Part shown: positions 1-64,000 of the stretch, piece after piece
Numbering within the stretch: position 1 is the first letter of the stretch
Layout: each line of letters opens with the position of its first letter
Made by a program: the position numbers and the translations under genes
The notes under the pieces: model-generated
Databases searched by the model: none
What the model saw: only the letters and a program-made list of their open reading frames with translations
What the model was told of the DNA's origin: nothing
Sequence record: OP557969.1
Reading direction: 5' to 3' (one strand)
Length of the DNA: 64,000 nt

Positions 1-51
1 AAAGTACACATACAGAGAAGTACTAAAACTTATCTCTATATAAGGTAATAT

Positions 52-240
52 ATGAACAATTTTGAGTACTACTTCAATAAACTAAATTCCATAGAACAAA
101 ATATGCACAAAACATATATTAAGTACTATCAATCATCTGCATCTGGAATTAAAAATATATCAATAAAGATTATCACTAACCGTGTACTGACACCTGAACG
201 TGATATGTATATTGATGTACTGAAACTCATCTCTGTGTAA
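52..240 (+). CDS. small hypothetical protein, MNNF paralog 1
   Basis: ORF with RBS-like AAGG; aligns by eye with 251-430 (MNNF...KYY...KNI...LxSV). Confidence 0.75.
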   Translation: MNNFEYYFNKLNSIEQNMHKTYIKYYQSSASGIKNISIKIITNRVLTPERDMYIDVLKLISV

Positions 241-250
241 GGAATAAACT

Positions 251-430
251 ATGAACAATTTCTATATAGAACACATAAACATTAAAGACCGTTTCATGTA
301 CGACACCTTCGTGAAGTACTACAACCTCGCAACTAACAGTACTAAAAATATTAATCTCAATAGCTGCATACACCAAGCACTAACAAAAGATAATCCCTTC
401 AGGGAAATCCTCGCTCTCGCATCTGTATAA
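251..430 (+). CDS. small hypothetical protein, MNNF paralog 2 (59 aa, below ORF-track cutoff)
   Basis: AAGGA RBS; MNNFYIEHINIKDRFMYDTFVKYYNLATNSTKNINL...LALASV. Confidence 0.75.
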   Translation: MNNFYIEHINIKDRFMYDTFVKYYNLATNSTKNINLNSCIHQALTKDNPFREILALASV

Positions 431-441
431 AGGAATCTAAT

Positions 442-1104
442 ATGAAACTTAATCAACACAGCAAACAATACCTTAAGCACTTTAAATACCTCAACAGTAT
501 TCAAGCAGAATCAGTTACATCATCTTATACGTATCACCCGAATATACTAAAGAAACGAAATAAAAAGAAAAAATCCAGAAATGTTCTCGTATCTAAGAAC
601 CTCAAATCGTACTTGAAGAAAAATAATATAGCTCTTGCTTTTATTAGTATCTATAATACTGATTTAAAAGTATTGAGTACTAATACCAGCACAAAAGCAC
701 TAAAGAATGCATCTATCTATATACACATTGATAATATCCCGTGCACTATAATTCTATCTTTCGGGAATGTATACTTCTTCGGGAATTGTAATAGCACCCA
801 TGATATCAGTACTGCACAATTCCAAATCGGAGATATGTACTGCATGGGTTCAGAAAAAATACACGATAACATGCACTTCTTCCAAAAGCAACGTACTAAC
901 GAAACTGATACAGTACTGCAATTCCTCAAAGAACTAGAACACAAAGAATTATCCGACGAAGAAGAATTCATGTACAGTACTGTAATCGATAATCCAGGAC
1001 TCTATAAAAACGCGTACAAACTAACAAAACATGTCCAGGAACTTATCAGTACTGATAAGAAATTTCATCACCTCATTACGTATATAACCTCTACAATGTC
1101 CTAA
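442..1104 (+). CDS. hypothetical protein with family C-like motif
   Basis: 220-aa ORF, AAGGA RBS, LSDEEEFMYSTVID near C-terminus. Confidence 0.75.
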   Translation: MKLNQHSKQYLKHFKYLNSIQAESVTSSYTYHPNILKKRNKKKKSRNVLVSKNLKSYLKKNNIALAFISIYNTDLKVLSTNTSTKALKNASIYIHIDNIPCTIILSFGNVYFFGNCNSTHDISTAQFQIGDMYCMGSEKIHDNMHFFQKQRTNETDTVLQFLKELEHKELSDEEEFMYSTVIDNPGLYKNAYKLTKHVQELISTDKKFHHLITYITSTMS

Positions 1105-1125
1105 CTCTAATATATAGATACTAAT

Positions 1126-1317
1126 ATGAAAAATCAATACAAAGAACTATACACAAAATATTTCCCCCAGTACCTGATCGAACACCTGGAACATACCAGA
1201 AACTTAAACACTAAAATTAATAAAGCAAGATTCATTATGTGCACTAAATCAGTAATAGATACTACCAACTATAATAGCGTACTATATCACATCCTGTACC
1301 TAACATTCGTGTACTAA
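1126..1317 (+). CDS. family A paralog
   Basis: QYKELYT...F.MC...YHILYLTFVY. Confidence 0.8.
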   Translation: MKNQYKELYTKYFPQYLIEHLEHTRNLNTKINKARFIMCTKSVIDTTNYNSVLYHILYLTFVY

Positions 1318-1327
1318 AGAGAACAAT

Positions 1328-3897: not shown

Positions 3898-4170
3898 AAA
3901 AACGTAATAACAGTACTGATATTAACAGAATGGTGTCAGTACTGACTTTAATCTAATACATTATGCCACCAGCACAAGCTGGTGGATTCCCTCTAACAGT
4001 ATTCAGTACTACATGATAGTCTTCATCCTCCTAGGGTAACATAGTGAGGGCTATTGTGGGAGTACTGAATACTCCTTTCAAAAGATAGAATAATGGTATA
4101 GTACCGACGGATTTTGGGCGTAGTTACCCTGGGTGGATTTTGGACGTAGATATGTCTAGCCCTCCAGAAG

Positions 4171-5075: not shown

Positions 5076-5438
5076 ATGGCGACTCAAATCAATAAAATTA
5101 TTGCTAACCTGGTTAACTTCCGTGAAGAGATGAAAGGTCTTCCGGCTGAAACGGTAAAAATTCACATTTCAGCTTATCGGGAACTTATTGCAATGTTACC
5201 GCTTAAGCGTGAACAATACGCCGCTACCGTGATGCTTGATGCGATGATCAATAAGATGATCGCCAGTGATTTAACGATGGTTTATCAGTACATGGGCGAA
5301 AATTTCGCGGTGTCTGGTAAGCCAGTACCAGGGATGGCAACTACTGAGGAATTGCACGGTTTAAATTTAAAACAAGATGCATGGGATAATATGCCTCGTT
5401 TCCTGGTATGGGCTGACAGTGGCAAAATTTACAAATAA
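5076..5438 (+). CDS. early hypothetical protein
   Basis: promoter cassette and GAGAG RBS; start moved to MATQINK. Confidence 0.8.
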   Translation: MATQINKIIANLVNFREEMKGLPAETVKIHISAYRELIAMLPLKREQYAATVMLDAMINKMIASDLTMVYQYMGENFAVSGKPVPGMATTEELHGLNLKQDAWDNMPRFLVWADSGKIYK

Positions 5439-5530
5439 GTTTAATAAAGTACTTGCATACTAAGTTAAAACAAGTATAATACTTTCTATCAGGTGGGGAA
5501 TAGTTCCCCACTATATAAGAGGATTAAAAA

Positions 5531-5770
5531 ATGGCTAAATCAAAAATGTTCTTAGGTCACAAAAACAAAACTCATTGGAATGTAAGCCTTTGGATTAATA
5601 ACGATGAATCATTATACCGGTTGGCCCTGGACTTTATTGCCGCCAATACTAATCGCAATGATGCGGCCCGTCATATGATGTTATTTTTAGAACAGACTGG
5701 ACAAGATAAAACACCGGACGGATTCAAATATAGCACTACTGCGATCCGTGCGGCGATGGTTGGAATGTAA
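5531..5770 (+). CDS. early conserved phage protein (HKNKTHWNVSLWINN family), copy 1
   Basis: near-identical N- and C-termini to 7569-7808. Confidence 0.85.
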   Translation: MAKSKMFLGHKNKTHWNVSLWINNDESLYRLALDFIAANTNRNDAARHMMLFLEQTGQDKTPDGFKYSTTAIRAAMVGM

Positions 5771-5860
5771 TAGAATAGAATTTATTTAAAGTACTATCAT
5801 TTTTTGCGATAGTACTTTATAATAGTGTTTTATTCATACACCAACGATAAGGGCAATAGC

Positions 5861-6127
5861 ATGAATATTAAGTATTTTGCGACGCGTGAACAAGCTCGGA
5901 AGGCGGCGAAAGTGGAAGGTGCAACGTTTAAAGATATGGGCATACAATCGGAACGTGGTAAACGTTGGGCCATTGTAAAGCGTAGTACAGCCAGATCATT
6001 ACAGTACTGGTTAGCGGCTTTAAAAAGTCCTGCTAGTGTATCGCGTCGAGTGGTAGAAATAAAGCTCGACCGTAAGGGGAATCGTGTTACCGTGTACCGT
6101 ACTAAAAAGATAGCAGTACTTGAATAA
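5861..6127 (+). CDS. early basic protein, paralog of 18547-18942
   Basis: shared KYFATREQAR..A..EGATFKDMG and DRKGNRVTVY. Confidence 0.75.
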   Translation: MNIKYFATREQARKAAKVEGATFKDMGIQSERGKRWAIVKRSTARSLQYWLAALKSPASVSRRVVEIKLDRKGNRVTVYRTKKIAVLE

Positions 6128-6214
6128 AAAGTACTTGCAAACTATGCTTAAAAGCGTATAATACTTTATATCAGGGCGGGGGAATAGTTCCCGCCTATAA
6201 CCGGGAGTAATAAA

Positions 6215-6445
6215 ATGACTAATATGTATATGACTGAAGTTAAAACCGTAAAAGATACTACCACGAATAAAACTACTTACTTACAGCGGATCTGTGGTGT
6301 CTGGCAACGTATCAGCAAATCAAAGTACTTTAAATTAACATCATATGCCAATCGTTCGGATTCATTCAGTACTGAAATAAAAGGTAATAAAGTACACCAA
6401 TACGGCACTTATTATTATTATAGCCTGGACGCGATTGCAGTATAA
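6215..6445 (+). CDS. early hypothetical protein
   Basis: own promoter cassette and GGAG RBS. Confidence 0.75.
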   Translation: MTNMYMTEVKTVKDTTTNKTTYLQRICGVWQRISKSKYFKLTSYANRSDSFSTEIKGNKVHQYGTYYYYSLDAIAV

Positions 6446-6475
6446 GTAGTTTACAAATCTTTACAATTGCCGGTA

Positions 6476-6555
6476 TTGACTTAAAATGTCAGTACTGGCA
6501 TAATGTATTCATTGGCAGATAAGCCGTGGCCCATAGGGTGCGGAAGTGTATCTAT
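6476..6555 (+). ncRNA. motif-1 element with own promoter
   Basis: TTGACT-17-CATAAT, GGC/GCC hairpin, CCCATAGGGTGCGGAAGTGTATCTA. Confidence 0.5.
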
Positions 6556-6586
6556 AGAAAAATTAGTTTAGTACAGTTACAATTGT

Positions 6587-6648
6587 GCACCCTGTGGGTT
6601 AGCTGTTGTCATGGGGTATATTATGCCAGTACTTGATAATGCTGTCAA
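6587..6648 (-). ncRNA. motif-1 element with own promoter, convergent with 6476
   Basis: minus-strand TTGACA...CATAAT, then CCCACAGGGTGC. Confidence 0.5.
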
Positions 6649-6728
6649 TACTTTTTTACTATTCAGTACTGAAAACTATTTGATAAAAAGTACTTGCAAA
6701 CTATGTTTAAAGGCGTATAATGTTTTAC

Positions 6729-6803
6729 ATCAGGACGGGGAACGAAATAAGTAACTTCCCGTTAAGTAGCCCAGGAGTAAGGCATACGAAAAACTCCCCT
6801 GAT
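6729..6803 (+). ncRNA. motif-2 structured RNA, copy 1
   Basis: starts at promoter +1; ATCAGG/CCTGAT closing stem; GGAGT-AAG-N4-ACGAAAA-ACTCC hairpin; no ORF. Confidence 0.6.
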
Positions 6804-6871
6804 AAAATAGTTTGACAATTGTTTTTAAAAGCGTATAATACTTACATCAACTACTGAATGAGGGTTACAAA

Positions 6872-7483
6872 ATGAAAACTATCACTACTACTACTTATGT
6901 TATGGATTTTTCTGAATTGAACGCAGAACAAAAAACGTCAGCTATCGAACTGGTTCGGGAACGTGAAAAAAACTTAAACGACGATTATTTTTCTGAAAGT
7001 GAAATTGAATACTATAAAGAAACAGTACTACCGGAATATGGCATTAATGACGCAGAAATACAATTCAGTGGTTTTTGGTCGCAAGGTGACGGTGCATCAA
7101 TTAGTACTGACCACGTTGACGCAGTGAAGTTTTTACGTAAGGTAAGAGCATTAACTAAGTATCGCTCAATCCGTCACCTGCTGAATGAAGATGATTTGGC
7201 GATGAGTGTAAAGCGTTCTCACTCCCGCTACTCACATGAGAACACTGTAAGCGGGTACATTGAATCGGCTTACACTGATTTAACCGCAAAACAAGAAACG
7301 TTAGTTAATGAGCTTGAGGAACTGCTCACTGATACTATTCGTGAATTGTCACGCAAGTTATACCGTGATTTAGAGAATGCATATGAGGATCAATTCACTA
7401 CTGAAAACATCGTATCACTGATTGAGGGTAACGAATATCAATTCAATGTTATTGATGGCGTAGTAGAATCAATTGCATATTAA
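6872..7483 (+). CDS. conserved phage/plasmid protein (FSGFWSQGDGA family)
   Basis: 203 aa; motif IQFSGFWSQGDGAS; own promoter. Confidence 0.8.
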   Translation: MKTITTTTYVMDFSELNAEQKTSAIELVREREKNLNDDYFSESEIEYYKETVLPEYGINDAEIQFSGFWSQGDGASISTDHVDAVKFLRKVRALTKYRSIRHLLNEDDLAMSVKRSHSRYSHENTVSGYIESAYTDLTAKQETLVNELEELLTDTIRELSRKLYRDLENAYEDQFTTENIVSLIEGNEYQFNVIDGVVESIAY

Positions 7484-7568
7484 AAAGTACTTGCAAACTA
7501 AGTTTAAAAGCGTATAATACTTTATATCGAGGCGGGGAATGGTTCCCCGCTCAAACGAGGATTTAAAA

Positions 7569-7808
7569 ATGGCTAGTACTAAAACTTACAACGGTCACAA
7601 AAACAAAACTCATTGGAATGTTTCCTTATGGATTAATAACGGTGAGTCATTGTATCGGCTTGCTCAAAGTTGCATCGCACAATGTAAAACTAAAGATATT
7701 GCGGCCCAATGTATGTACCGCAGATTAAAAGCCAACGGTACTACTACAACGCCGGACGGATTCAAGTATAGCACTACGGCGATCCGTGCTGCAATGGTTG
7801 GAATGTAA
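7569..7808 (+). CDS. early conserved phage protein (HKNKTHWNVSLWINN family), copy 2
   Basis: duplicate of 5531-5770; start moved to MASTK. Confidence 0.85.
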   Translation: MASTKTYNGHKNKTHWNVSLWINNGESLYRLAQSCIAQCKTKDIAAQCMYRRLKANGTTTTPDGFKYSTTAIRAAMVGM

Positions 7809-7864
7809 CATTCAGTACTGAATCAATGGCGGGTGTGGTTCCCGCCTTTACTGAGGATTATCTA

Positions 7865-8146
7865 ATGAGTAAAGTAATTAACTATACAGTACTAAGCAAG
7901 TCATTATCTATTAGCCAGTGCACCGATGGTTTTTGGCTGTACGATGAAACGCGTGGTATGAATTTAGCTATGCAGGAGAAAACTCCTGATGCGGCATATC
8001 TTAAAGCACTGGAATACTACCAGAAGCGTTTAACGGAAGTAGAAAACAATTATCAGAATCTCAAAGAGAAAGTAGATAATTTCGTTGGTCAATTCGTTGA
8101 CGATGACGAAGGGCACTACTGCGACCGTTGCGGATCTTACAGTTAA
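7865..8146 (+). CDS. early hypothetical protein with C-terminal CxxC
   Basis: GAGGA RBS; coiled-coil segment; YCDRCG. Confidence 0.75.
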   Translation: MSKVINYTVLSKSLSISQCTDGFWLYDETRGMNLAMQEKTPDAAYLKALEYYQKRLTEVENNYQNLKEKVDNFVGQFVDDDEGHYCDRCGSYS

Positions 8147-8163
8147 GTACTAAGGATTATATA

Positions 8164-8367
8164 ATGAGTGATTTAATTGAACGTATCAAAGAGCTTGAAG
8201 AAAAAGAATTACAGCTAATCGGCTTACAGAATAAAATCTATCATGATTTGGGGAGTTTTATCAATGCTTGGGATAGTGGCGATCCTGATGCGTTACCTGC
8301 TAACCGCCAGGCAATGATCAATGATGTGCGTGGTGTCTTTGAGTATGTTTTAAAGCAATTAAATTAA
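8164..8367 (+). CDS. early hypothetical protein
   Basis: AAGGA RBS; start moved to MSDLIER. Confidence 0.7.
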   Translation: MSDLIERIKELEEKELQLIGLQNKIYHDLGSFINAWDSGDPDALPANRQAMINDVRGVFEYVLKQLN

Positions 8368-8454
8368 AAAAGTACTTGCAATTAGTTTTTAGTACTGTAT
8401 AATGTTTTACATAGAGGGGAGAAAATGGTTCTCCCTAGTAAAGAGGAAAATAAA

Positions 8455-8676
8455 ATGGCTAATATTACTACTCTTTCCCAACTTGAAGCACTGGTTAAAT
8501 CTATGCGGGAACATGCCGACAAAATCGGCGTAAAAGATCCAGCCGTTTGCTTTTGTGACGAATTGAATGATGATACATTGGTAATAGCAGAAGTCCAGGA
8601 CGTTTCTAACTATTCATCGCGTTACACTGGCGGCGTAGCAAATAAAGGTGACTTCTGTTTATACCTTACCAAATAA
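8455..8676 (+). CDS. early hypothetical protein
   Basis: promoter cassette, GAGGA RBS. Confidence 0.75.
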   Translation: MANITTLSQLEALVKSMREHADKIGVKDPAVCFCDELNDDTLVIAEVQDVSNYSSRYTGGVANKGDFCLYLTK

Positions 8677-8677
8677 C

Positions 8678-8710
8678 AACGCGGGGAGATAATAACTCCC
8701 CGTTACTTTT
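8678..8710 (+). terminator. intrinsic terminator
   Basis: CGGGGAG/CTCCCCG stem followed by T-run. Confidence 0.6.
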
Positions 8711-8742
8711 TCAGTACTGAATCATTTAATAGACGGATCTAT

Positions 8743-8812
8743 GCACCCGGTGGGTTAGTGACTGTTTCGTCTTGATGTAGTAATTATGCCAGTACTGGAT
8801 GCGGTTGTCAAG
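8743..8812 (-). ncRNA. motif-1 element with own promoter
   Basis: minus-strand TTGACA...CATAAT, GAC/GTC hairpin, CCCACCGGGTGC. Confidence 0.5.
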
Positions 8813-8924
8813 AACTATTTTTCAAATACTTTTTACTAAAGTACTTGCTAATAGTTTTTAAACGCGTATAATGTTTTACATAGCAAGGGGAAACGGTTTC
8901 CCCTGGTAACTAAGGAATAAGAAA

Positions 8925-9161
8925 ATGATCGAACAAATCAAATCAACGTCTGCGAATGTAACGGGAACGGTATCACACTTTACTAGTGATGAATCGCGGG
9001 GCGTACCCTATTGTGCTGTACATGTAAACACTGAGGGTAACTACTGGTTTACGGTTTACGGATCATATTCATTTGGACGGCCAGGGCATCAAAAAATTCT
9101 GGATAAAGTACAGCCAACGGGTAAAAATATCACTGCTGAAATGTTTTATAAAAAATCATAA
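8925..9161 (+). CDS. early hypothetical protein
   Basis: promoter cassette, AAGGA RBS. Confidence 0.75.
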   Translation: MIEQIKSTSANVTGTVSHFTSDESRGVPYCAVHVNTEGNYWFTVYGSYSFGRPGHQKILDKVQPTGKNITAEMFYKKS

Positions 9162-9245
9162 AGTACTTGATAATAGTTTTTAGTATTGTATAATATTTTA
9201 CATCGCAAGGGGGAGCGGTTCCCCCTGGTAACTAAGGATAATAAA

Positions 9246-9545
9246 ATGAAAATTGCAATCATCGCCCTGGCTTTATCTGTTTCCTCTTTCGCTGTTAATG
9301 CGTCATTAGATGTAAGTAGTGAAAAATTCATTCAGTGCACTGTTGCAATGACCGATGAAAGAACTGGCGAGATTGTATTAAAGGATTTAGAGATCCAGCC
9401 GGAAGCATTTAAAAACGGCCCGTTCCATGAAGAAGACGAAAACGGTAGTACAACAATTTATTATGATGCTAGTACTAAACGCGGTTCGGTCACGGTTATG
9501 GATACTGAGAAAGTAACTCATACAGGCGTTATTAATTGCCGTTGA
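9246..9545 (+). CDS. predicted exported protein with signal peptide
   Basis: MKIAIIALALSVSSFAVNA signal-peptide pattern; two Cys. Confidence 0.75.
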   Translation: MKIAIIALALSVSSFAVNASLDVSSEKFIQCTVAMTDERTGEIVLKDLEIQPEAFKNGPFHEEDENGSTTIYYDASTKRGSVTVMDTEKVTHTGVINCR

Positions 9546-9566
9546 TTGATACTACGGGGTAACATC

Positions 9567-9797
9567 ATGACTAAGCGAATAGTTTTACTTAACGCTGGAA
9601 GTACTACACAACTCCTTAACGCCGTGCATTATGATATTGAAACGAGCGTCAATCTTATCAGTACTGTAGTATTGTTGGACACTGGAAAGGTCGCAAATGA
9701 TAAAGCGATTGCAGGTATACTAACGGATCTTAAACCAGGTTGCAGTACTCCAATAACTTTAAATGATAAAGTGTTTAATATTTTACTAACTGATTAA
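9567..9797 (+). CDS. early hypothetical protein
   Basis: GGGG RBS; ends before terminator. Confidence 0.65.
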   Translation: MTKRIVLLNAGSTTQLLNAVHYDIETSVNLISTVVLLDTGKVANDKAIAGILTDLKPGCSTPITLNDKVFNILLTD

Positions 9798-9803
9798 GTA
9801 CAT

Positions 9804-9825
9804 AGCCCACCAGGTGGGCTTTTTT
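9804..9825 (+). terminator. intrinsic terminator
   Basis: AGCCCAC-CAG-GTGGGCT-TTTTT. Confidence 0.85.
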
Positions 9826-9914
9826 GTTTTTGTAGTATTGTAGTACTGAGATACTTTGAAAATAGTTTTAAAAAAGTAGTTGACATTACCGCAAAAAGGC
9901 GTAGAATGTATTAC

Positions 9915-9987
9915 ATCAAGACGGGGAGCACTAAGTAGACCGCCAGTAAGTCGAACGAAAAACTGGACACGTCGAGAAAACTTTGAT
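9915..9987 (+). ncRNA. motif-2 structured RNA, divergent copy 3
   Basis: ATCAAG/CTTTGAT ends; CCAGT-AAG-N4-ACGAAAA-ACTGG hairpin with compensatory changes. Confidence 0.5.
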
Positions 9988-10030
9988 ACACTAATAAACG
10001 TAAACTAAACTTTAATTGAGGATTTATAAA

Positions 10031-10513
10031 ATGGCGAATGTAAAATCATTTCTGAAAGCACTGATTTCCAACGATACTGCTATTGCGGCTGAACTGCTGG
10101 CGGATCTGGATAACGATACCATGAAAGCAGTACGCAACAATTTTAACATTGCGTACAGTGAAGCTAAAGAACTGCAAGCCAAAAAGGTAGCAGAACTGGA
10201 AGAACAGAAAAAAGCCCGTGAAGAAGAACTACAAGCAACGATTGAAAGTATTCAGGCGGCAGTTGCTGGGTTGGATCTGGATGTAGTTGTAGAAATGGCA
10301 CATAAAGCCCTGGCAGTTAAGTACGGGGAAGATAAGCCAGTAGCTAAACCTAAAAAATGGATTCAGGAACGCGTAACGGTTGTTCTTGATAATGGCGAAG
10401 AACATTTAATTCCCGTGCGTGGTAACTGCATTGCGGTAGTTCTGGATGCTATCAAAGAAAGCGGATTGACTCGCGAGGAATGGATCGAAGCTCACCGCAA
10501 AATTGAAGCATAA
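10031..10513 (+). CDS. H-NS/StpA-like protein lacking the QGR AT-hook
   Basis: coiled-coil N-terminal half; C-terminus DNGEEHLIPVRGNCIAVVLDAIKESGLTREEWI parallels H-NS [34 protein letters not shown]. Confidence 0.55.
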   Translation: MANVKSFLKALISNDTAIAAELLADLDNDTMKAVRNNFNIAYSEAKELQAKKVAELEEQKKAREEELQATIESIQAAVAGLDLDVVVEMAHKALAVKYGEDKPVAKPKKWIQERVTVVLDNGEEHLIPVRGNCIAVVLDAIKESGLTREEWIEAHRKIEA

Positions 10514-10534
10514 CAATTAAAGTACTGAATCACT

Positions 10535-10561
10535 AGCCCACTTCTTATAGTGGGCTTTTTT
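10535..10561 (+). terminator. intrinsic terminator
   Basis: AGCCCACT/AGTGGGCT stem and T-run. Confidence 0.85.
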
Positions 10562-10603
10562 GTGTTTATCGTTTACCAGTCCACTAGCACCGCCTAGAGT
10601 CGA

Positions 10604-10684
10604 TTCTAACGCATTAAACTGATTATCTGATGAATAGCCCTAGCTGGTGGCGTTAATGCCGTTAGAACGCGATTGAGGACGTTT
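10604..10684. repeat. palindromic intergenic element (relatives at 4806-4896, 14953-14977)
   Basis: TTCTAACGCATTAA/TTAATGCCGTTAGAA inverted repeat; shared CGTTAGAA..GC..GAGG.CGTTT arm. Confidence 0.55.
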
Positions 10685-10788
10685 AAAGTATTTTGCAAAA
10701 AGTAATAAAAAGTACTTGCACGATTAAGAGATTAGAGTATAATTAATTACATCAAGACAAGACACCTTAACTAACTGAGGATATAAAG

Positions 10789-10941
10789 ATGAATACTTAT
10801 GAACTGGATTGTTTCACTTTACAAGTAATGTCAGTATGCAGTAAAAAAGATTGGTCATCAAAGGAATTTAAAGCAGTTATTGCGTGTGCAAAACACGGCA
10901 AGACTATCAATGAAACGGCATCAATCATTGATAAACTTTAA
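10789..10941 (+). CDS. small early protein (50 aa), paralog of 14732-14875
   Basis: promoter and GAGGA RBS; C...GK...T..II.K. Confidence 0.7.
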   Translation: MNTYELDCFTLQVMSVCSKKDWSSKEFKAVIACAKHGKTINETASIIDKL

Positions 10942-11012
10942 AAAATAGTTTGACAATAGTTTTAAGTACTGCGATAATACATACATCAACTACTGAATAG
11001 GAATAAAAAACA

Positions 11013-11240
11013 ATGGCTATCGTAATCACTCGCGTAACTGGTACTACTGGCACTGCTTCAACTGTTGCTGTAATTACTAATAAGAAAGGTGCAGAATTAC
11101 ATTTTGCAATGGATAAATGGGCCGTTAATGAGTTTGGTCAGTGGGCAAGTGTAGAATACATTGAAACCTATCAAGTGCCATCGATTAGCTTAACTGATTT
11201 AGGTGTAGAACGTATCCTTTGCCTGGATGAATTAAATTAA
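11013..11240 (+). CDS. early hypothetical protein
   Basis: own promoter, AGGA RBS. Confidence 0.75.
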   Translation: MAIVITRVTGTTGTASTVAVITNKKGAELHFAMDKWAVNEFGQWASVEYIETYQVPSISLTDLGVERILCLDELN

Positions 11241-11326
11241 AAAAGTACTTGCAAAGTAAATCAAATAAAGTATAATACATTACATCAAGGGGAGAAAATG
11301 GTTCTCCCCACTAAGAGGAAACTAAT

Positions 11327-11470
11327 ATGAAAACTTGTCAATGTGGTAAAAAATCTATTACGGGTTTGAAACGGGGCGTTGCACTTTGCCAGTATCATTA
11401 TAATGCTCAAGTATGGGGTAAAGAATGGGCCGACCAGGTGGAAGCAGCAAAGAAAGCAAAAAGTAAGTAA
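11327..11470 (+). CDS. small putative zinc-binding protein (47 aa)
   Basis: promoter cassette, GAGGA RBS; CQC...CQYH. Confidence 0.7.
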   Translation: MKTCQCGKKSITGLKRGVALCQYHYNAQVWGKEWADQVEAAKKAKSK

Positions 11471-11551
11471 AAATATTATCACAGTACTATTGACATAGAT
11501 TGATAGTACTGGCATAATAGATTTTATCAAGACAACTAAGAGGAAATTAAA

Positions 11552-11896
11552 ATGGCTAACATCAATACTATAGCAGCACAAAATATCAACCTGTCTTCTG
11601 TTGAAGTTGTACACATTGCCGCCCGGCGTTGGTTCCAGGCGTCTTATGGTAATACTTATTTCTCTTTAACGGTAGATGTTGAAATCAATGGCGAATTTAT
11701 TGAAGTAGTAAACGTGCCGTTCCAATATGGCTACGGGGATCATTTTGACACTGTAGCAATGGAAGAATTTAGCAAGGTTATTAATATGGAAGGTAAAGAG
11801 TTTTTACGCGGTTCTTATCTTTCCCGTTTTTGCCGTGATAATAATATTACTGTTTATAGTTCTGTTAGTGATGTTAAACGCAAAAAAGATCTTTAA
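11552..11896 (+). CDS. early conserved phage protein, paralog of 18128-18451
   Basis: RW...GNTY.S...F.YGYG...DVKRKKD. Confidence 0.8.
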   Translation: MANINTIAAQNINLSSVEVVHIAARRWFQASYGNTYFSLTVDVEINGEFIEVVNVPFQYGYGDHFDTVAMEEFSKVINMEGKEFLRGSYLSRFCRDNNITVYSSVSDVKRKKDL

Positions 11897-11976
11897 TTAG
11901 CTTTACTTTATGCAGATACTTTGATATAGTGTCTGCATAGGGGAAAGAAATTAAATCAACTTAAGAGGATAGTAAA

Positions 11977-12246
11977 ATGAAAAATATCAGTACTTTAATC
12001 GATGCAGGTACACATGTTCGTCGGTCTATGGTTGCAACCAGTTCTACAAAACAAGTAGCGAGCGGTTATCTTGTATTTGTGCACGATGGTAAACTCCTGG
12101 AACGTTCAATCAATTTTGATGTTAAAAACAATTGCCGTTTTATTATCTTTCGCCGTGAACAATATAAGATCGACATTCCAGCGAAGCCCATTAGCGGGGC
12201 GTACAACGTGCAATCATTGTTTGAGCGTCAACCATACACCTATTAA
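11977..12246 (+). CDS. early hypothetical protein
   Basis: GAGGA RBS. Confidence 0.7.
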   Translation: MKNISTLIDAGTHVRRSMVATSSTKQVASGYLVFVHDGKLLERSINFDVKNNCRFIIFRREQYKIDIPAKPISGAYNVQSLFERQPYTY

Positions 12247-12297
12247 TCAAAACAACGTTAGCGGTCGATTTAGGCCGCTTATACTGGGGATTATATA

Positions 12298-12570
12298 ATG
12301 AATACTAATCAAGTACTGAACGAGATTGAAAGCATCATTAAACCGATGAAGCGTACTGATGCAATGTTAACACCGGAAGAATGCCGCTTATATGAGCGTT
12401 ACAGCGTCGAACAAGTACAGGAAATGGCTATGGCTATCCCTGCCGTTCAACAGCCTGAGAACGCAGTACAGGACGTTACAGGGGATTATAACATCAATCC
12501 AGTACTAGGGAAGATTACACCAATTACCGAAGAACAAAAAGACTACTTAAGCCAGTACTTAAAAGGTTAA
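12298..12570 (+). CDS. early hypothetical protein
   Basis: GGGGA RBS. Confidence 0.7.
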   Translation: MNTNQVLNEIESIIKPMKRTDAMLTPEECRLYERYSVEQVQEMAMAIPAVQQPENAVQDVTGDYNINPVLGKITPITEEQKDYLSQYLKG

Positions 12571-12575
12571 TTAAT

Positions 12576-12785
12576 ATGCTTACTGTACAGGATAAGATCG
12601 ACATCTTAAAGGTTAATATGTATGTGATTGATGCCGTACCTGGTAAAGTATTTGCATACGATGACACCACTGTAAGCAATTTCTACTATAGCCAGGAAGT
12701 GGGGGATCTTTCTGTACAGTCGGTTATTGAAAACGTAGTTAATGCAGCGTATGAGCATTTACTTTCAAATAGTACTTGCAATTAG
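12576..12785 (+). CDS. early hypothetical protein
   Basis: coupled to upstream ORF. Confidence 0.7.
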   Translation: MLTVQDKIDILKVNMYVIDAVPGKVFAYDDTTVSNFYYSQEVGDLSVQSVIENVVNAAYEHLLSNSTCN

Positions 12786-12853
12786 TTTTTAAACGCGTAT
12801 AATGTTTTACATGAAGGGGAGAAATAGTACTCCCACTAATTAAGGAATAGTAA

Positions 12854-13000
12854 ATGAAAGCATCAAAAAAGAGTACTAACAAGAAAGCACGTTCAACTTT
12901 AGATGGGGTATTCCCTTTGCGTTTTGTGGATGAAGTAGTTTCCTACCCGCTGGGCCTTACTCCTGAGATGGTAGAAAGTTTGCGTAAATCTAAAAAATAG
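12854..13000 (+). CDS. small basic early protein (48 aa)
   Basis: promoter cassette, AAGGA RBS; MKASKKSTNKKARSTLDG... Confidence 0.65.
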   Translation: MKASKKSTNKKARSTLDGVFPLRFVDEVVSYPLGLTPEMVESLRKSKK

Positions 13001-13081
13001 TACTTGCAATTAGTTTTTAGTACTGTATAATGTTTTACATGAAGGGGAGAAATGATTCTCCCCAAGAACAGGAGAAACAAA

Positions 13082-13234
13082 ATGAAACAATACAACGCTC
13101 GGTTTGATGTTACTATCGGCAACGGCAAAGGTCAATTCTCTTTCAGTACTCGTAAGAGTTATACAGAAAACTTCTTGCGTAATTGTGCACTGACCGCCGC
13201 ACAAATTAAACATTATTTTCAGGCTAAAAAATGA
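13082..13234 (+). CDS. small early protein
   Basis: promoter cassette, AGGAG RBS; start moved to MKQYNARF. Confidence 0.7.
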   Translation: MKQYNARFDVTIGNGKGQFSFSTRKSYTENFLRNCALTAAQIKHYFQAKK

Positions 13235-13320
13235 AATCATTAGCTTATTATAGTTCGGCCCTGGTCGGTGCATTGATCGCGGCATTGTTAGTAGCTTATC
13301 TATTCTTTATGGTGATTTAA
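13231..13320 (+). CDS. 29-aa single-pass membrane peptide
   Basis: ATGA coupling; MKSLAYYSSALVGALIAALLVAYLFFMVI. Confidence 0.55.
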   Translation: MKSLAYYSSALVGALIAALLVAYLFFMVI

Positions 13321-13458
13321 ATGAATCCTAACGGTATAATTTACAGTACTCCTAAAACGAAAGCAGATAAAGCCAAAGCACGTAAAGCGAAAGTAAAGGA
13401 GTACATCAAGCAAGGCATGACACGAAAGGCGGCAGTACTGAAAGCTAAAAATAAATGA
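13321..13458 (+). CDS. 45-aa Lys/Ala-rich basic protein
   Basis: MNPNGIIYSTPKTKADKAKARKAKVKEYIKQGMTRKAAVLKAKNK. Confidence 0.55.
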   Translation: MNPNGIIYSTPKTKADKAKARKAKVKEYIKQGMTRKAAVLKAKNK

Positions 13459-13459
13459 A

Positions 13460-13496
13460 AAAAGTGGTTGACTTCGGTCAGCCATTTTGCTATTAT
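13460..13496 (+). promoter_or_regulatory. composite terminator hairpin / extended -10 promoter
   Basis: AAAAGTGGTTGAC-TTCG-GTCAGCCATTTT hairpin containing TTGACT-17-(TGC)TATTAT. Confidence 0.7.
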
Positions 13497-13499
13497 ATA

Positions 13500-13548
13500 T
13501 TCATTGAGAGATAGCTCACTAGCCCACGGGGTGCGGGAGTGTATCTAT
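13500..13548 (+). ncRNA. motif-1 element
   Basis: TGAG/CTCA hairpin, then CCCACGGGGTGCGGGAGTGTATCTA. Confidence 0.5.
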
Positions 13549-13678
13549 TATATAAGCATTGAGTACTGAAAACTATTTTAAAAGTATTTGTAGAAAGTAC
13601 TTGCAAACTATCTCAATAGGCGTATAATGTTTTACATCAAGGGGGAAACGGTTTCCCCTAGTAATAAGGAATAAAATC

Positions 13679-14020
13679 ATGACTATTGCAATTGTACAAT
13701 CTAACTTTGAAAACGAAATCATCGCCCAAGCACTGCGTTTAAATGATGGTCGGGCCGAAATTAATTACGGTTTCAATTCAGGCGGTTGTGAAAAATATCA
13801 GTACTTTATAACTGCTGATGGCGGTGTCCTGGGTATTAATACAGTTATTGTAAACATTCAGAAAATTAATTTCAATGATCCAGACGATAGCCAGTTTTAC
13901 ATTATAGGCGTAGACGTGAACTATGAGGATGACTCACTAACTGATGATTACACTGGCGAGAAGTTAGAAAGTGCATACGGTGAAGATGATTATCAGTCAG
14001 TACCGGAAGATTTTGAATAA
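13679..14020 (+). CDS. conserved acidic phage protein (GG...YFITADGGVL...DVNYED...ESAYG family)
   Basis: motifs as named; promoter cassette. Confidence 0.8.
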   Translation: MTIAIVQSNFENEIIAQALRLNDGRAEINYGFNSGGCEKYQYFITADGGVLGINTVIVNIQKINFNDPDDSQFYIIGVDVNYEDDSLTDDYTGEKLESAYGEDDYQSVPEDFE

Positions 14021-14143
14021 TATTAAAAAATAGTTTGACAATAGATTATAGTACTGTATAATATTTTACATGAAGGGCAACGGGAAGTTTTTAAAACTTC
14101 CCTATAGGGAGAATAGTTCTCCCACTAACAGAGAGAAAACAAA

Positions 14144-14356
14144 ATGGCTAATATCTGCACTGTACTGAAAAATGCAAAACAAGTTTTATTTTCTGATCAC
14201 GATCATTTAAACAAGGATATTACTGGCGTTCGGAATATCAAAGATGTAAAAAGTGTTATGGGCATCTATTGCAATATGAAACGTGTTGGAACGTTCGGTA
14301 ATAAATTTCTATACCAAGCGGGGGATTACAATTTTACACTGACTATCATTAACTAA
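14144..14356 (+). CDS. early hypothetical protein
   Basis: promoter with double hairpin leader. Confidence 0.75.
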   Translation: MANICTVLKNAKQVLFSDHDHLNKDITGVRNIKDVKSVMGIYCNMKRVGTFGNKFLYQAGDYNFTLTIIN

Positions 14357-14438
14357 AAATATTATCACAGTACTATTGACATAGATTGATAGTACTGGCA
14401 TAATAGATTTTATCAATTACACTACTAAGGAATTAAAA

Positions 14439-14618
14439 ATGGCTATCATCGCAAAAACTGAAATCATCGGCCTGGATTCTATCATCATGACGTTTGAAGA
14501 TCAAAAAGGTATGTATGTAGTTTCCTATGGTGATTATGTTCGGGAGTATGAAACGGTAGACGAAGCCTTTGAAAGTTACATTCGCCAGGTGAATAAAGCA
14601 TACGACGATTACCGCTAA
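14439..14618 (+). CDS. small early protein (59 aa)
   Basis: promoter, AAGGA RBS; MAIIAKTEIIGLDS... Confidence 0.7.
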   Translation: MAIIAKTEIIGLDSIIMTFEDQKGMYVVSYGDYVREYETVDEAFESYIRQVNKAYDDYR

Positions 14619-14731
14619 AATATATTACCAGTACTATTAAAGATATTGACAACGTTTGATAGTACTGGCATAATAAGTTTTATAAACAGTAGTCAAATAG
14701 TAGTTAACTTAACAAAAGAGAGAGAAACAAA

Positions 14732-14875
14732 ATGATCGCACTGGATTCATTCATCGATGCAGTTCTGGCAAAAACTGGCGAGGATCTGACCGCAGAACAA
14801 TACGCGATGATCGAGCAATGCCAGCAAGACGGTAAATCGGTGAAAGATACTGTTAAGATTATCCGCAAGATGTAA
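14732..14875 (+). CDS. small early protein (47 aa), paralog of 10789-10941
   Basis: GAGAG RBS; QCQQDGKSVKDTVKIIRKM. Confidence 0.7.
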   Translation: MIALDSFIDAVLAKTGEDLTAEQYAMIEQCQQDGKSVKDTVKIIRKM

Positions 14876-14881
14876 GATTAT

Positions 14882-14910
14882 AAGCCCATTAGTTAACGCT
14901 GGTGGGCTTT
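14882..14910 (+). terminator. intrinsic terminator
   Basis: AAGCCCATTAG/CTGGTGGGCTTT stem. Confidence 0.65.
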
Positions 14911-14975
14911 AATCATTTACCCTATACAATGCCAGTACTAAACCGTTTATCTCGTTAGAATGCATTACAGGACGT

Positions 14976-15179
14976 TTGACAATGATTAGCATGAAATCAG
15001 TACAAAAACAAATAGAAACATTATCAAAAATTAAACGTAAACAGTACTCATTAGAATATAATATCAATGGTAACTATCATCTAATGAAAGAGAATAATTT
15101 TATCGTCATTGATGAATCATTGCAAATTATTAGTATAGTACTGAAAGCATTAATTAATGATAGAAAAAGGTTAAAATAA
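14976..15179 (+). CDS. hypothetical protein
   Basis: ORF coupled to the TraR-like gene; start uncertain. Confidence 0.5.
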   Translation: MTMISMKSVQKQIETLSKIKRKQYSLEYNINGNYHLMKENNFIVIDESLQIISIVLKALINDRKRLK

Positions 15180-15436
15180 TGGCAGTAGGATTCGCGAAAG
15201 ATGGAGCCGAGCAAGATGAGATTAACGCAGTTATTCAAGCCGCCGTTAACCACGCTAGAAAGCAAATTAACGCACAAATAGAATCACTGATACATTGCCT
15301 CGACTGCGGCGATAAAATCCCTGAGAATCGCCGACAGGCTGTTAAGGGTTGTAAGTACTGCATAACTTGCCAGGAGGATCATGATAGTACTTTTAAACGT
15401 CCCCCGCGTAATTGTTGGCATAGATCTATGAGATAA
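15179..15436 (+). CDS. traR: DksA/TraR-family C4 zinc-finger protein
   Basis: CLDCGDKIPENRRQAVKGCKYCITCQ = CxxC-IPxxRR-CxxC; acidic N-terminal helix. Confidence 0.9.
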   Translation: MAVGFAKDGAEQDEINAVIQAAVNHARKQINAQIESLIHCLDCGDKIPENRRQAVKGCKYCITCQEDHDSTFKRPPRNCWHRSMR

Positions 15437-15500
15437 AAAGTAATTGACAGTACTGAAAGATAGTGTATAATGTTTTATATCTTAACTGAGGATAGAAATC

Positions 15501-15857
15501 ATGGGAATACAACATATCACGCGGACCACTGACAATGGCGAGATCACTGGTTATCAAGTACAGGGCAAAGTAGCACAATTGCAGTACTGGTTTGTTAAAC
15601 GTGGAATCATTGCACCGGATCTTGATTATGACCGTGTAGCGTTTATTGATTCTCTTTATGTTGATCCTGATAGTCGGGGCAATGGTGAAGGTAACGAATT
15701 AATGAATGCCTTTATTGATGCCGCCGATGATTCAGATTGTATCATCTTAGAATGCGATACGGGAGAAGATAACGCCTTTAATCTTAAAGAATGGTACGAA
15801 GGTTTCGGATTCGAGGTATTGATAGATAGTGAATATCCTATCATGATTTTATCATAG
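15501..15857 (+). CDS. GNAT-family acetyltransferase
   Basis: IDSLYVDPDSRGNGEGNELM (motif A) and WYEGFGF. Confidence 0.85.
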   Translation: MGIQHITRTTDNGEITGYQVQGKVAQLQYWFVKRGIIAPDLDYDRVAFIDSLYVDPDSRGNGEGNELMNAFIDAADDSDCIILECDTGEDNAFNLKEWYEGFGFEVLIDSEYPIMILS

Positions 15858-15936
15858 TACTTGCATTTAGTTTTCAGTACTGTTATAGTACTTGCATCAA
15901 GGGGAAACATCTTCCCCTACTAAGAGGAAATAAAAA

Positions 15937-16125
15937 ATGGAAAACTTATCAAGTATTTTAGTACAAGATGATTTCGGTAATCCTGGAAGTGCTATCATTG
16001 TTCGGGGCAATAAAGCAACGTTTGTTATTGCTGGTGGACCCGTACAGCGTAGCATTAAAAATAATGCTGTTACCATTAATAATGTACGCTATCGCTTAGA
16101 TAAAGAATTAATTCATAAACTGTAA
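15937..16125 (+). CDS. early hypothetical protein
   Basis: promoter cassette, GAGGA RBS. Confidence 0.7.
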   Translation: MENLSSILVQDDFGNPGSAIIVRGNKATFVIAGGPVQRSIKNNAVTINNVRYRLDKELIHKL

Positions 16126-16152
16126 TATTAATTTAATAGAGGATAACAATAA

Positions 16153-16476: not shown

Positions 16477-16559
16477 AAACTATTGACAATGCAATCCAGT
16501 ACTGTATAATAGTTTACATGAAGGGGAGAAATGATTCTCCCCACTAAGAGGAAAGAAAA

Positions 16560-16772: not shown

Positions 16773-16858
16773 AAAGTACTTGCACAGTACTGAATAAAGT
16801 GTATAATGTTTTATATCGGAAGGGGAATAGTTCCCCTCCTAACAAAGAGGAAAGTATA

Positions 16859-61220: not shown

Positions 61221-61760
61221 AATCCTGAAAGGTTCCTTTAAAGGAAACGTTTAAAACCTAATCCACTCGAAAATGTAGAGGGTAGATGAGTAGTCCTTTC
61301 AGTACGAACAGCAGATGAAACCCGTTAGATGATGGCATAGTTTGAACCACTCACGGCAATGCGGCTGTATAAAGAACTCCAATAGGATAAAGAGAGTTCC
61401 TCGATAGACATATAAGGATCGCACCTTACCAATTATCTAAGGGAGATTTCATGAGAAATATGCGGTCGGAATTATACAATATAGTTGCGTCCAAATTTTG
61501 TGAAATCAAATACAAGTACTGGTCATATGGTATTTGTATTATGTGTTGGGATGTTTAAGACCAACGACCGTTGCTACAAGAACCGCGATAGAGAGAAACC
61601 GAGCAACCCGCTTTCGTCTCGTATGAGAATTCGTGATATGAACTATGTGAAGACCACCAGCGTCAAATTTTTTTGTTCTTTCCCCTGCGGGGGGATGAAA
61701 TATGCTCAAACAAACCTCGTCAATATTAATTAAAAGAATTATTATTACTTGTAGAATTTG
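61221..61760. ncRNA. candidate long structured non-coding element
   Basis: about 540 nt without a credible ORF, GC-richer than flanks, several hairpins. Confidence 0.3.
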
Positions 61761-61843
61761 ACATGCGTAGCATGGATAATTCTACTGGTGTTGATGTAAT
61801 CAACATCACGTATATATTCATTGAAGTTTCCACAGGAATAATG

Positions 61844-62386
61844 ATGGCATTTATTAAAAAACAAAAAACATTTACCTATAAGACTTTGGATTTTATTGAT
61901 TGCGAAAATCAAACACAGAATGAAGATAACTTTACTGGATTTGTTGTTATTAAAGAAAAAGGATGTATTTCGTATATCAAGGAATTACAAAATGGAATTG
62001 AAGTAACGTCGGTTAAATTACTTCCTACACAAAAGCCAACAATATCCAAAGCACAATATGGTAATTATTTTGAGGAAAGATATAGTAATAATTTAATAAG
62101 TGTTAAGGCTCATATTATAAAAGGAGAACTAGAAGGAGAATATAGAAAATTCAATCCACAAGGAAAATGTGTTTGGGTTAAATACTTCAATTCAGGAAAT
62201 GATGTAACATCTGAAATAATTGAGTTTTTAGGTTTAACATGTACCCCTGAAACTCTTCATGACTACAAATTTAATGCTGAAGAAGAGTTTAATCTGATGA
62301 TGCGTTATGGAACACATTTTAAATTTTTATATGAATATAACATTGACAGTGGTGTTTTTGATAGGATAGTACAAAACTGTCTTTAA
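61844..62386 (+). CDS. MORN-variant-repeat-like protein with family C-like motif
   Basis: GELEGEYRKFNPQGKCVWVKYFNSG; NAEEEFNLMMRYG. Confidence 0.65.
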   Translation: MAFIKKQKTFTYKTLDFIDCENQTQNEDNFTGFVVIKEKGCISYIKELQNGIEVTSVKLLPTQKPTISKAQYGNYFEERYSNNLISVKAHIIKGELEGEYRKFNPQGKCVWVKYFNSGNDVTSEIIEFLGLTCTPETLHDYKFNAEEEFNLMMRYGTHFKFLYEYNIDSGVFDRIVQNCL

Positions 62387-62402
62387 CAAAAGGATTTATA
62401 AC

Positions 62403-62927
62403 ATGTCGAAGAAGGATACTTCGAAGAAAAAGCAATCAGTACATTTCAGTACTGGAAAAGATAACTGGACAACTCCAAAGGATTTCTTTGAAGAGTTGGA
62501 TGAGTTATGGGGATTCACACTTGATGCTGCTTGTGTTGATGAGACGGCATTATGTGAAAATTATTTTACACCAAATGACGATTCTCTATCACAGGATTGG
62601 GGAAAGAATATAGTTTGGTTAAACCCGCCATATAGTGATTTGAAAACATGGTTATCTAAAGCAGTAGATGCGTATAATAAAGGAGCAACAGTCGTAATTC
62701 TAGTTCCATCACGAACTGATACAATAGCCTTCCATGAATATGCTGCAAAAGTTTGTGATTGTATTTGTTTCATTAAAGGAAGATTACGATTTGGTATCCC
62801 AGAAGAACCAGAGAAGAAGACAGATTCAGCACCATTTCCTTCATGTCTTATAGTTCTTGATAATTACTTAACTACTGCTAAAATAAATTATCTTAAATCT
62901 ATTGGGTTGGTAATGAAGAAACTATGA
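62403..62927 (+). CDS. dam: phage DNA N6-adenine methyltransferase
   Basis: WTTP...FTLDAAC...SQDW...VWLNPPYS...RLRF; NPPY motif IV (T1/HP1-type Dam family). Confidence 0.9.
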   Translation: MSKKDTSKKKQSVHFSTGKDNWTTPKDFFEELDELWGFTLDAACVDETALCENYFTPNDDSLSQDWGKNIVWLNPPYSDLKTWLSKAVDAYNKGATVVILVPSRTDTIAFHEYAAKVCDCICFIKGRLRFGIPEEPEKKTDSAPFPSCLIVLDNYLTTAKINYLKSIGLVMKKL

Positions 62928-63457
62928 AAGAAACATGTATTTTATCATTTATGAGATGTAACCCTGTACATAATGGACATGGTTTAGTTTTTGAAAAGGC
63001 CAAAACATTACAAGAACAGTACAATGCTGATTTGAAAATATATCTAAGTACCAGTACTGACAATATAAAAAACCAACTCCCACCTGAACTAAAAATGTAT
63101 TATACAGAGGGATTTTATCCTTCAGTACAAGAGAACATCTACACCGAAGACAATCTATTTGATATAATGAGAGAACTGGATGGAAAATACTTAGATGTAT
63201 TTTTCATATGTGGTTCAGACCGTATTGAATCTTTTCAGAAAACTCTTGACAGTTACAATGGGAAATTATATAATTTTTGTAATATAAAAGCAATTCAAGC
63301 AGGTATTGATCGCCAATCAAGTCAATATAGTTCAACACAAATGCGTAACTTCGCAAAAAATGAAGATTTTGATAATTTTCGAGAATTTTTACCAGGTAAT
63401 GATGAGGACTTAAAAATTCAATTATTTGAAGATGTTATCAAATACATGAGGAAATAA
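62924..63457 (+). CDS. cytidylyltransferase-like (HIGH-family) nucleotidyltransferase
   Basis: RCNPVHNGH (HxGH), CGSDR, SSTQMR (KMSKS-like). Confidence 0.85.
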   Translation: MKETCILSFMRCNPVHNGHGLVFEKAKTLQEQYNADLKIYLSTSTDNIKNQLPPELKMYYTEGFYPSVQENIYTEDNLFDIMRELDGKYLDVFFICGSDRIESFQKTLDSYNGKLYNFCNIKAIQAGIDRQSSQYSSTQMRNFAKNEDFDNFREFLPGNDEDLKIQLFEDVIKYMRK

Positions 63458-63459
63458 CT

Positions 63460-63753
63460 ATGACAGTACTGTTCAAAACTAATCCAGTTCTTTGGGAACA
63501 AAATGAGCAAGCAGGATTCCGTTCTATCCATGTTGAATACAAGGGTAACACGGTAGTTGCAATTATTGCTAATAAAACTTTAGGAAAATGGACTGCACAA
63601 GTTGTTCCTATGGGATATTCTTATACATCTGATGAGGTAGAATTTTTGGCTGATCTTTATCGTCAAATGCCTTTTATCATTAATGTTCTAGAACAAAGTG
63701 ATACATTAACACATGAAGATGTAATCAACTTTCTTGGAAACTTACATGTGTGA
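63460..63753 (+). CDS. hypothetical protein
   Basis: GAGGA RBS. Confidence 0.75.
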   Translation: MTVLFKTNPVLWEQNEQAGFRSIHVEYKGNTVVAIIANKTLGKWTAQVVPMGYSYTSDEVEFLADLYRQMPFIINVLEQSDTLTHEDVINFLGNLHV

Positions 63754-64000
63754 TGTGATTAATCTTACTGGATATTTTTTACAAGAATCAATGATTAAAT
63801 TTAGTGAACACTTTCCAGTACTGGATGGTATAGAAATGTGGCATGTTAAGCCACTTTTCAACTCTTTCAGTAAAGAGCACAAAATGTTATTGACAGAAGC
63901 GAGTAAATCTAATAACATATGTGAAATCAAGATTGGTGTGAATGTCTATAAAGGGTTGGTAATCTTTTTTGACAATAACAGCAATTATTTTTATATTGTT
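63746..64000 (+). CDS. partial ORF with hydrophobic segment, runs off window
   Basis: MCDVINLTG...GLVIFLTITAIIFI; no stop in window. Confidence 0.55.
   Translation, partial: MCDVINLTGYFLQESMIKFSEHFPVLDGIEMWHVKPLFNSFSKEHKMLLTEASKSNNICEIKIGVNVYKGLVIFFDNNSNYFYIV

Follow-up and report, generated by a model that had tools for sequence, protein, structure and literature searches.

The DNA analysed here, a window of 64,000 nucleotides identical in sequence to bases 1-64000 of Escherichia phage ph0011 (OP557969.1, 348,217 bp), is crowded with copies of a single palindrome, AGTACT. The phage belongs to the genus Asteriusvirus and is a PBECO4/121Q/RaK2-like jumbo myovirus. An approximately tenfold excess of AGTACT throughout this clade, combined with fixed positions at early promoters, makes the word look like the landing site of a DNA-reading protein. 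We give a probability of about 0.45 to the reading that AGTACT is the binding word of a putative phage-encoded dimeric protein, acting both as an operator at early promoters and as a genome-wide mark of phage DNA. If a protein does read it, that protein would act as global regulator or organiser across an entire clade of 350-kb phages, with about a thousand sites per genome. RaK2-like phages of this size are under consideration for therapy. Literature searches for AGTACT as a phage motif returned nothing. The sites themselves can be entered as one feature:

1-64000: AGTACT field with 248 copies, of which 60 are CAGTACTG, at ~6 per kb in 1-24,500 and ~2.4 per kb in 24,500-64,000.

The preliminary description of this DNA had reported that AGTACT is over-represented in coding and non-coding sequence alike, and the counts bear this out. 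Against the 248 copies in the window, 21.4 are expected from base composition, and 18.8, 44 and 98 from Markov models of first, second and third order, respectively; the 60 copies of CAGTACTG compare with 0.7 expected. For the whole ph0011 genome, reassembled from fetched pieces and with its open reading frames (ORFs) called anew (593 ORFs, 93% coding), the corresponding figures are 748 observed against 92-118 expected for AGTACT and 168 against ~4 for CAGTACTG. AGTACT is the top hexamer by z-score both in the window and in the genome. The Markov and codon-shuffled controls that had been proposed leave the 6-12-fold excess standing: coding sequence holds 637 copies, compared with 194±12 after synonymous codons are shuffled within each gene (z=38) and 120±12 after whole codons are permuted. 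Codon or dinucleotide usage is thereby ruled out as the cause, and the gap between the two shuffles suggests that the protein sequences, too, have been bent towards AGTACT. The word occurs in all three reading frames (324/128/181) and between genes, where its density is 4.4 per kb overall and 11.8 per kb in bases 1-24,500, compared with 0.34 per kb expected.

Enrichment of a palindrome had been called unusual for a phage, and in this genome it is: 25 other 6-bp palindromes are missing from the window altogether, as are GGTACC and CGTACG from the whole genome. The phage thus purges restriction-type palindromes generally, yet accumulates AGTACT. Several further words, AGGCCT, CTCGAG, CTGCAG, GAGCTC, GCATGC, TCCGGA and the non-palindromic GAGCCC, are absent from ph0011, RaK2, GAP32 and Yen9-03. 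GGTACC, the KpnI site, has 49 copies in RaK2 vs 25 expected and none in GAP32.

The specificity for the hexamer is strict, since its one-mismatch neighbours lie at 0.4-2.0 times expectation, compared with 6.4 times for AGTACT itself. Its surroundings are symmetrical. C precedes it in 43% of copies and G follows it in 47%, positions -4 to -2 are T-rich and +2 to +4 A-rich, and a weaker A/T phasing extends further out. The C/G preference is present intergenically and in most reading frames, frame 1 losing the G at +1 (24%). The 12-mer TTCAGTACTGAA has 19 copies where 0.03 are expected; AGTACT would be read symmetrically, with TTCAGTACTGAA as roughly its full form. The sites are also unusually well preserved. 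Between ph0011 and Turkey3, which are 90% identical over the window, 82% of AGTACT sites are fully conserved; the proportion is 61% among all hexamers and 68% among those lying 12-18 bp from an AGTACT site; between ph0011 and PBECO4 the values are 81%, 55% and, for neighbouring hexamers, 65%. These comparisons indicate that the sites are under purifying selection, and AGTACT is a selected, symmetric signal at the level of the DNA. Together with the fixed registers at promoters, described below, site conservation argues for selection.

At the early promoters AGTACT stands at fixed positions. Between bases 5,400 and 23,400 lie about 50 small early genes, each with its own promoter, and the arrangements seen there are exemplified by the following features:

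5400-23400, + strand: early-gene cassettes, each with a strong sigma70-like promoter and most with AGTACT at -39, -29/-30 or -19/-20.

8371-8396, + strand: two-site promoter with starts 20 bp apart; the AGTACT beginning at 8371 overlaps the -35 element (TTGCAA at 8376), and that beginning at 8391 abuts the -10 element (TATAAT at 8398).

11483-11510, + strand: two-site promoter; the first AGTACT, at 11483, is located just upstream of TTGACA, and the second, at 11505, precedes GG-CATAAT.

15449-15454, + strand: example of the third register; AGTACT begins on the last -35 base (TTGAC-AGTACT), as it also does at 22912 and 19260.

A cassette identical to that at 11483-11510 is found at 14369-14396. 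We surveyed 40 sigma70-like promoters on the + strand of bases 1-24,600, placing the -10 hexamer at -12 to -7 and taking the first base of AGTACT as its register. The word falls within the core of 29 of the 40, with two copies in five of them. It stands at -39 in 10 cases, where it runs into the -35 element (AGTAC-TTGCAA, for example); at -19 or -20 in 16, as AGTACT-G-TATAAT or AGTACT-GG-CATAAT; at -29 or -30 in 3, as TTGAC-AGTACT; and at -42 or -43 in another 3. The fixed placements that had been described, namely AGTAC-TTGCA, AGTACTG-TATAAT and AGTACTGG-CATAAT, are therefore real. Registers -41 to -39, -31 to -29 and -20/-19 are dominant in four genera, represented by ph0011, RaK2, GAP32 and the Yersinia phage fHe-Yen9-03; PA5oct has none of them. 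Neighbouring sites are most often 20-22 bp apart, and RaK2 has 19 instances of a spacing of 20, where 2.5 are expected. Relative to start codons, AGTACT in the early region peaks at 12-18 sites per kb between -80 and -40, compared with a flat ~2 per kb in the rest of the genome. From this difference it follows that there are two tiers of sites, one operator-like at early promoters and the other scattered evenly along the genome.

How far does the signature extend? We set the AGTACT count of each genome against that of a reversed control word, and found the excess in nine of nine RaK2-like genomes: the ratios are 937/142 in RaK2, 1011/169 in GAP32, 981/136 in Turkey3, 891/135 in PBECO4, 1235/187 in CBB, 850/149 in Munch and 1012/136 in Yen9-03, and in the Mimasvirus XbC2, labelled a Xanthomonas phage, CAGTACTG has 176 copies against 2 of the control. 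More distant relatives are depleted, with 15/40 in PA5oct, 25/82 in Atu_ph07 and 0/127 in XacN1. Judged by the capsid protein, the enriched set is exactly the set with 80% identity or more to ph0011; for PA5oct and Atu_ph07 this identity is no higher than 59-67%. The signature follows phage phylogeny, and it is genome-wide and clade-wide. In the preliminary description it had been taken to suggest a window-wide binding or modification signal for a phage nucleoid, packaging or regulatory protein, or a methylation-coupled switch. The idea of such a signal has gained from the strict symmetric specificity, the evidence of purifying selection and the operator-like registers in four genera; the signal is not peculiar to the window. 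The host is quite different. Escherichia coli K-12 has 400 copies in 4.64 Mb, compared with 1147 of the control word (a threefold depletion), a density 1/25 that of the phage, so that a single ph0011 genome contains almost double the number of sites in the whole host chromosome.

Why should a phage that purges palindromes accumulate this one? On our preferred reading, a twofold-symmetric DNA-binding protein, encoded by the RaK2-like clade, would recognise AGTACT in its longer symmetric form. In the early region, where the sites overlap or abut the -35 and -10 elements and are often paired 20-22 bp apart on the same helix face, the bound protein would block sigma70 RNA polymerase, and so shut off or tune early transcription. 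The ~2 sites per kb elsewhere would load the same protein over all the phage DNA, leaving the host chromosome, with 25 times fewer sites per base, unloaded. The outcome would be a 'self' mark written in sequence, without base modification. The block of polymerase is suggested by the overlap of the sites with its promoter elements; that a protein binds, that the phage encodes it and what its binding does we infer, whereas the excess, its independence of coding, and the symmetry, conservation, promoter registers and clade distribution of the word are shown by the sequences themselves.

Known systems resemble the AGTACT field in part. Phage repressors have palindromic operators overlapping sigma70 promoters, and TF1 of phage SPO1 binds preferred sites at early promoters. 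AGTACT shares with these a twofold-symmetric site placed on the -35 or -10 element of early promoters at defined positions, often paired about two helical turns apart. It differs in its ~750-1200 copies per genome, most of them inside genes, in a core of only 6-12 bp, and in having a repressor that is putative. HIP1 of cyanobacteria (GCGATCGC) is likewise a short palindrome occurring far more often than expected in coding and non-coding sequence, kept by related genomes and accompanied by a methyltransferase gene, its function not established; the AGTACT excess, too, persists genome-wide after control for composition and coding, extends to all frames and to intergenic DNA, and is common to related genomes. 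Unlike HIP1, however, AGTACT is found in a lytic phage genome otherwise purged of palindromes, holds fixed positions at early promoters, is 25 times sparser in the host, and has a cognate methylation that is only hypothetical. Chi (GCTGGTGG), the signal for RecBCD, offers a third parallel, as an over-represented word that marks its own DNA without chemical modification; Chi is asymmetric, orientation-dependent and present about once per 5 kb, whereas AGTACT is a palindrome present once per 350-460 bp.

Several points weigh against a phage-encoded reader. A thousand or so sites per genome is far beyond the need of a repressor. The excess is limited to phages of Enterobacterales, one host label apart, which leaves room for a host factor, and methylation of AGTACT could yield part of the same pattern. 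The search for the protein itself, which covered 120 small core proteins against Pfam and 28 against PHROGs, returned no DNA-binding family. One early protein was examined as a possible reader:

18547-18942, + strand: basic early protein (phrog_8127), with a paralogue at 5861-6127.

The promoters of these two genes are the richest in AGTACT, with 2-3 sites each. The AlphaFold model of the protein (predicted local distance difference test score, pLDDT, 75; predicted template modelling score, pTM, 0.31) shows no DNA-binding fold and finds no informative structural match, only single-helix matches with Z of 3.6 or less; the best scores from a search of the ESM Atlas, 0.76-0.77, were equally uninformative. 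A 236-residue protein with a weak C2H2-like finger was dropped as a candidate, as a homologue exists in PA5oct.

Three alternatives envisage an agent other than a phage-encoded binding protein, and a fourth needs no reader at all. The preliminary description had named a methyltransferase encoded near the end of the window as a candidate writer of AGTACT:

62403-62927, + strand: candidate writer, an N6-adenine methyltransferase (Pfam PF05869, Dam; E=7e-33) with an intact NPPY motif and other invariant motifs.

If AGTACT is its target, the methylation state could serve both as a self mark and as a promoter switch, with incoming, fully methylated DNA behaving unlike newly replicated DNA. We consider this rather unlikely. 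In its favour, the enzyme is conserved, all nine enriched genomes have it, and PA5oct, Atu_ph07 and XacN1 lack it; methylation of adenine beside the -35 and -10 elements, which the sites abut, could influence the binding of sigma70; and the RaK2 paper reports, without showing data, methylated RaK2 DNA and two encoded methyltransferases (PMC3622015). Phylogeny confounds the co-occurrence, however, because 119 proteins core to the four enriched genera share this distribution, having no homologue in PA5oct, the sole outgroup for that count. A scan of genome contigs found 17 homologues, all distant (26-51% identity) and none in enteric prophages, and these 17 bacterial loci have no AGTACT excess. 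Tolerance of the word would follow from its being a target; a tenfold excess, with symmetric flanks reaching beyond the core, would not. For the enzyme, no structurally solved relative was found. Given the confounding and the 17 loci without excess, a writer role for it is neither supported nor excluded. An arrangement of ScaI type, with adjacent methyltransferase and endonuclease genes, was not found either: no nuclease gene adjoins 62403-62927, and the sole clade-specific PD-(D/E)xK gene found is ~100 kb away:

Genome 309080-309679: clade-specific PD-(D/E)xK protein, with invariant D99, E108 and K110.

This protein, found in IMG/VR only in RaK2-like genomes, exemplifies a different possibility, that AGTACT is the site of a restriction-like nuclease or nickase of the phage, used for replication, recombination or packaging. 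A strict 6-bp palindrome with weak flank preference, such as AGTACT, is typical of type II enzymes. The structural model (pLDDT 81) resembles I-Ssp6803I (Z 7.1), Hjc (Z 6.7), DpnI (Z 6.1) and further restriction enzymes, the whole set spanning Z 5-7. These matches, however, fall below the level that would show more than a shared fold; the model indicates a nuclease fold and nothing about specificity, and nothing links the protein to AGTACT rather than to GCGC, junctions or a homing site. With its gene so far from that of the methyltransferase, and the promoter registers left unexplained, we judge this very unlikely.

Could the reader instead belong to the host? Phages might have accumulated sites so as to make use of an Enterobacterales protein, for instance by recruiting or titrating a nucleoid-associated factor. 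With one exception, the enriched phages bear host labels from the Enterobacterales, and their depleted relatives infect Pseudomonas, Agrobacterium and Xanthomonas; the same genomes have also accumulated a host signal, Chi, in 13-18 forward copies vs ~1 expected. The one exception, XbC2, tells against a host factor, as does the threefold depletion of AGTACT in E. coli. We know of no host factor for AGTACT other than SlmA. The E. coli SlmA site, GTGAGTACTCAC, is palindromic and has the same central six bases, but each half-site needs G, T, purine, A, G (PMC3020112). The G and T at positions 1 and 2 and the purine at 3 that should flank AGYRCT are not enriched around the phage sites, where C is preferred at position 3 and G beside the core is disfavoured; GAGTACTC is the rarest flank, with 4 copies vs 168 for CAGTACTG, and a full site occurs 0-1 times per phage genome. 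SlmA was accordingly rejected as the reader, and a host reader of any kind seems to us quite unlikely. An excess produced by biased mutation or repair, of the very-short-patch type or as proposed for HIP1, with no reader using the sites, is highly improbable, and we place it among the rejected explanations. It would fit the absence of GCGC, of which GTAC is the double-deamination product, and the mild enrichment of GTGCAC. The neighbouring words, however, are not depleted, AGTATT, AATACT, AGTGCT and AGCACT standing at 1.16, 0.90, 1.63 and 1.81 times expectation, and the ~31 expected AGCGCT sites, even if all were converted, cannot give 748 copies of AGTACT. The enrichment is, moreover, restricted to A..T flanks, GGTACC and CGTACG having no copies at all, and fixed promoter registers and conservation point to selection.

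GCGC and Chi were counted in four fully fetched genomes of the enriched genera (ph0011, RaK2, GAP32 and Yen9-03) and in PA5oct. GCGC has no copy in ph0011, where 282 are expected, and is the only 4-mer avoided so strongly; it is also absent from the other three, compared with 337 copies in PA5oct. Forward Chi numbers 13-18 in each of the four genomes and zero in PA5oct. ph0011 has 18 forward and 6 reverse copies vs ~1 expected per strand, 9 of the forward copies being in the first 24 kb. The copies in the window are as follows:

3966-3985, 10643, 14898, 16030, 17278, 19627, 21519, 23098, 23321 and 61654: Chi octamer.

These counts allow a broader and decidedly speculative suggestion, for which we would not claim much likelihood: that RaK2-like jumbo phages separate their own DNA from that of the host by sequence words, being GCGC-free, AGTACT-dense and Chi-rich, rather than by base modification. 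A phage nuclease could then destroy the host chromosome while sparing a GCGC-free phage genome, the density of AGTACT would let a phage protein coat, regulate or protect phage DNA alone, and Chi sites would have been added against RecBCD. Its effectors would be the putative AGTACT reader and clade-specific nucleases, with the PD-(D/E)xK protein and a conserved HNH protein as candidates for the enzymes that may lie behind the absence of GCGC. Two further genes outside the window are of note:

Genome 114797-115414: conserved HNH protein.

Genome 313766-314731: clade-specific sigma70-family factor.

Phages of the T4 type put chemical labels on their own DNA, and a modification-free self-labelling of viral DNA would, if true, stand beside these. 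In practical terms, AGTACT provides a handle, in that a simple probe could retrieve the reader and digestion with ScaI would report on modification; the AGTACT-dense, GCGC-free signature could also serve to pick out these phages, and any satellites mimicking them, in metagenomes. ph0011 also encodes a C5-cytosine methyltransferase (PF00145), which was dropped as a correlate of the signature, a homologue being present in PA5oct. Its frame (genome 287301-289181) encodes 626 residues in ph0011, compared with ~300 in RaK2 and GAP32, and matches Pfam in three pieces, which suggests an inserted element.

The early region has other features besides its AGTACT sites. A repeated unit at 13455-13600, 17184-17330, 20453-20600, 23200-23345 and 6446-6600 combines a promoter, TTGACT...TATTAT, with a conserved non-coding element of ~70 nucleotides; its core is without AGTACT in four of the five copies, that at 6446-6600 being the exception. 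The element may represent a family of small RNAs; no Rfam match and no transfer RNA were found in the window. Many early transcripts (5480-23000, between promoter and start codon) begin with a conserved GC-rich hairpin, GGGGAGAA-TAGT-TCTCCCC, which adjoins the ribosome-binding site on its upstream side. Among the early proteins, that encoded at 19004-19258 is small and basic, with a ParE-like toxin domain (PF24732, E=4.6e-11), and is kept across the clade; that at 15179-15436 has a DksA/TraR C4 zinc finger (PF01258, E=1e-11) and may modulate the secondary channel of RNA polymerase.

The window, or part of it, is present in the assembled contigs of 20 public runs from animal gut, manure and wastewater, 6 of them RNA libraries. 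Contigs from four of the runs show strain variation, with cassettes gained or lost at the repeated promoters: entire early cassettes are omitted at 14362-14644, 16125-16483 and 17763-18035, and the breaks fall at repeated promoter sequence, implying that early genes are gained and lost between strains by recombination there. Beyond the early region, two long runs of packed + strand ORFs, at 24757-31258 and 33330-58122, are almost without intergenic DNA, and in both the ORFs are of similar sizes, ~70 and ~150-200 residues.

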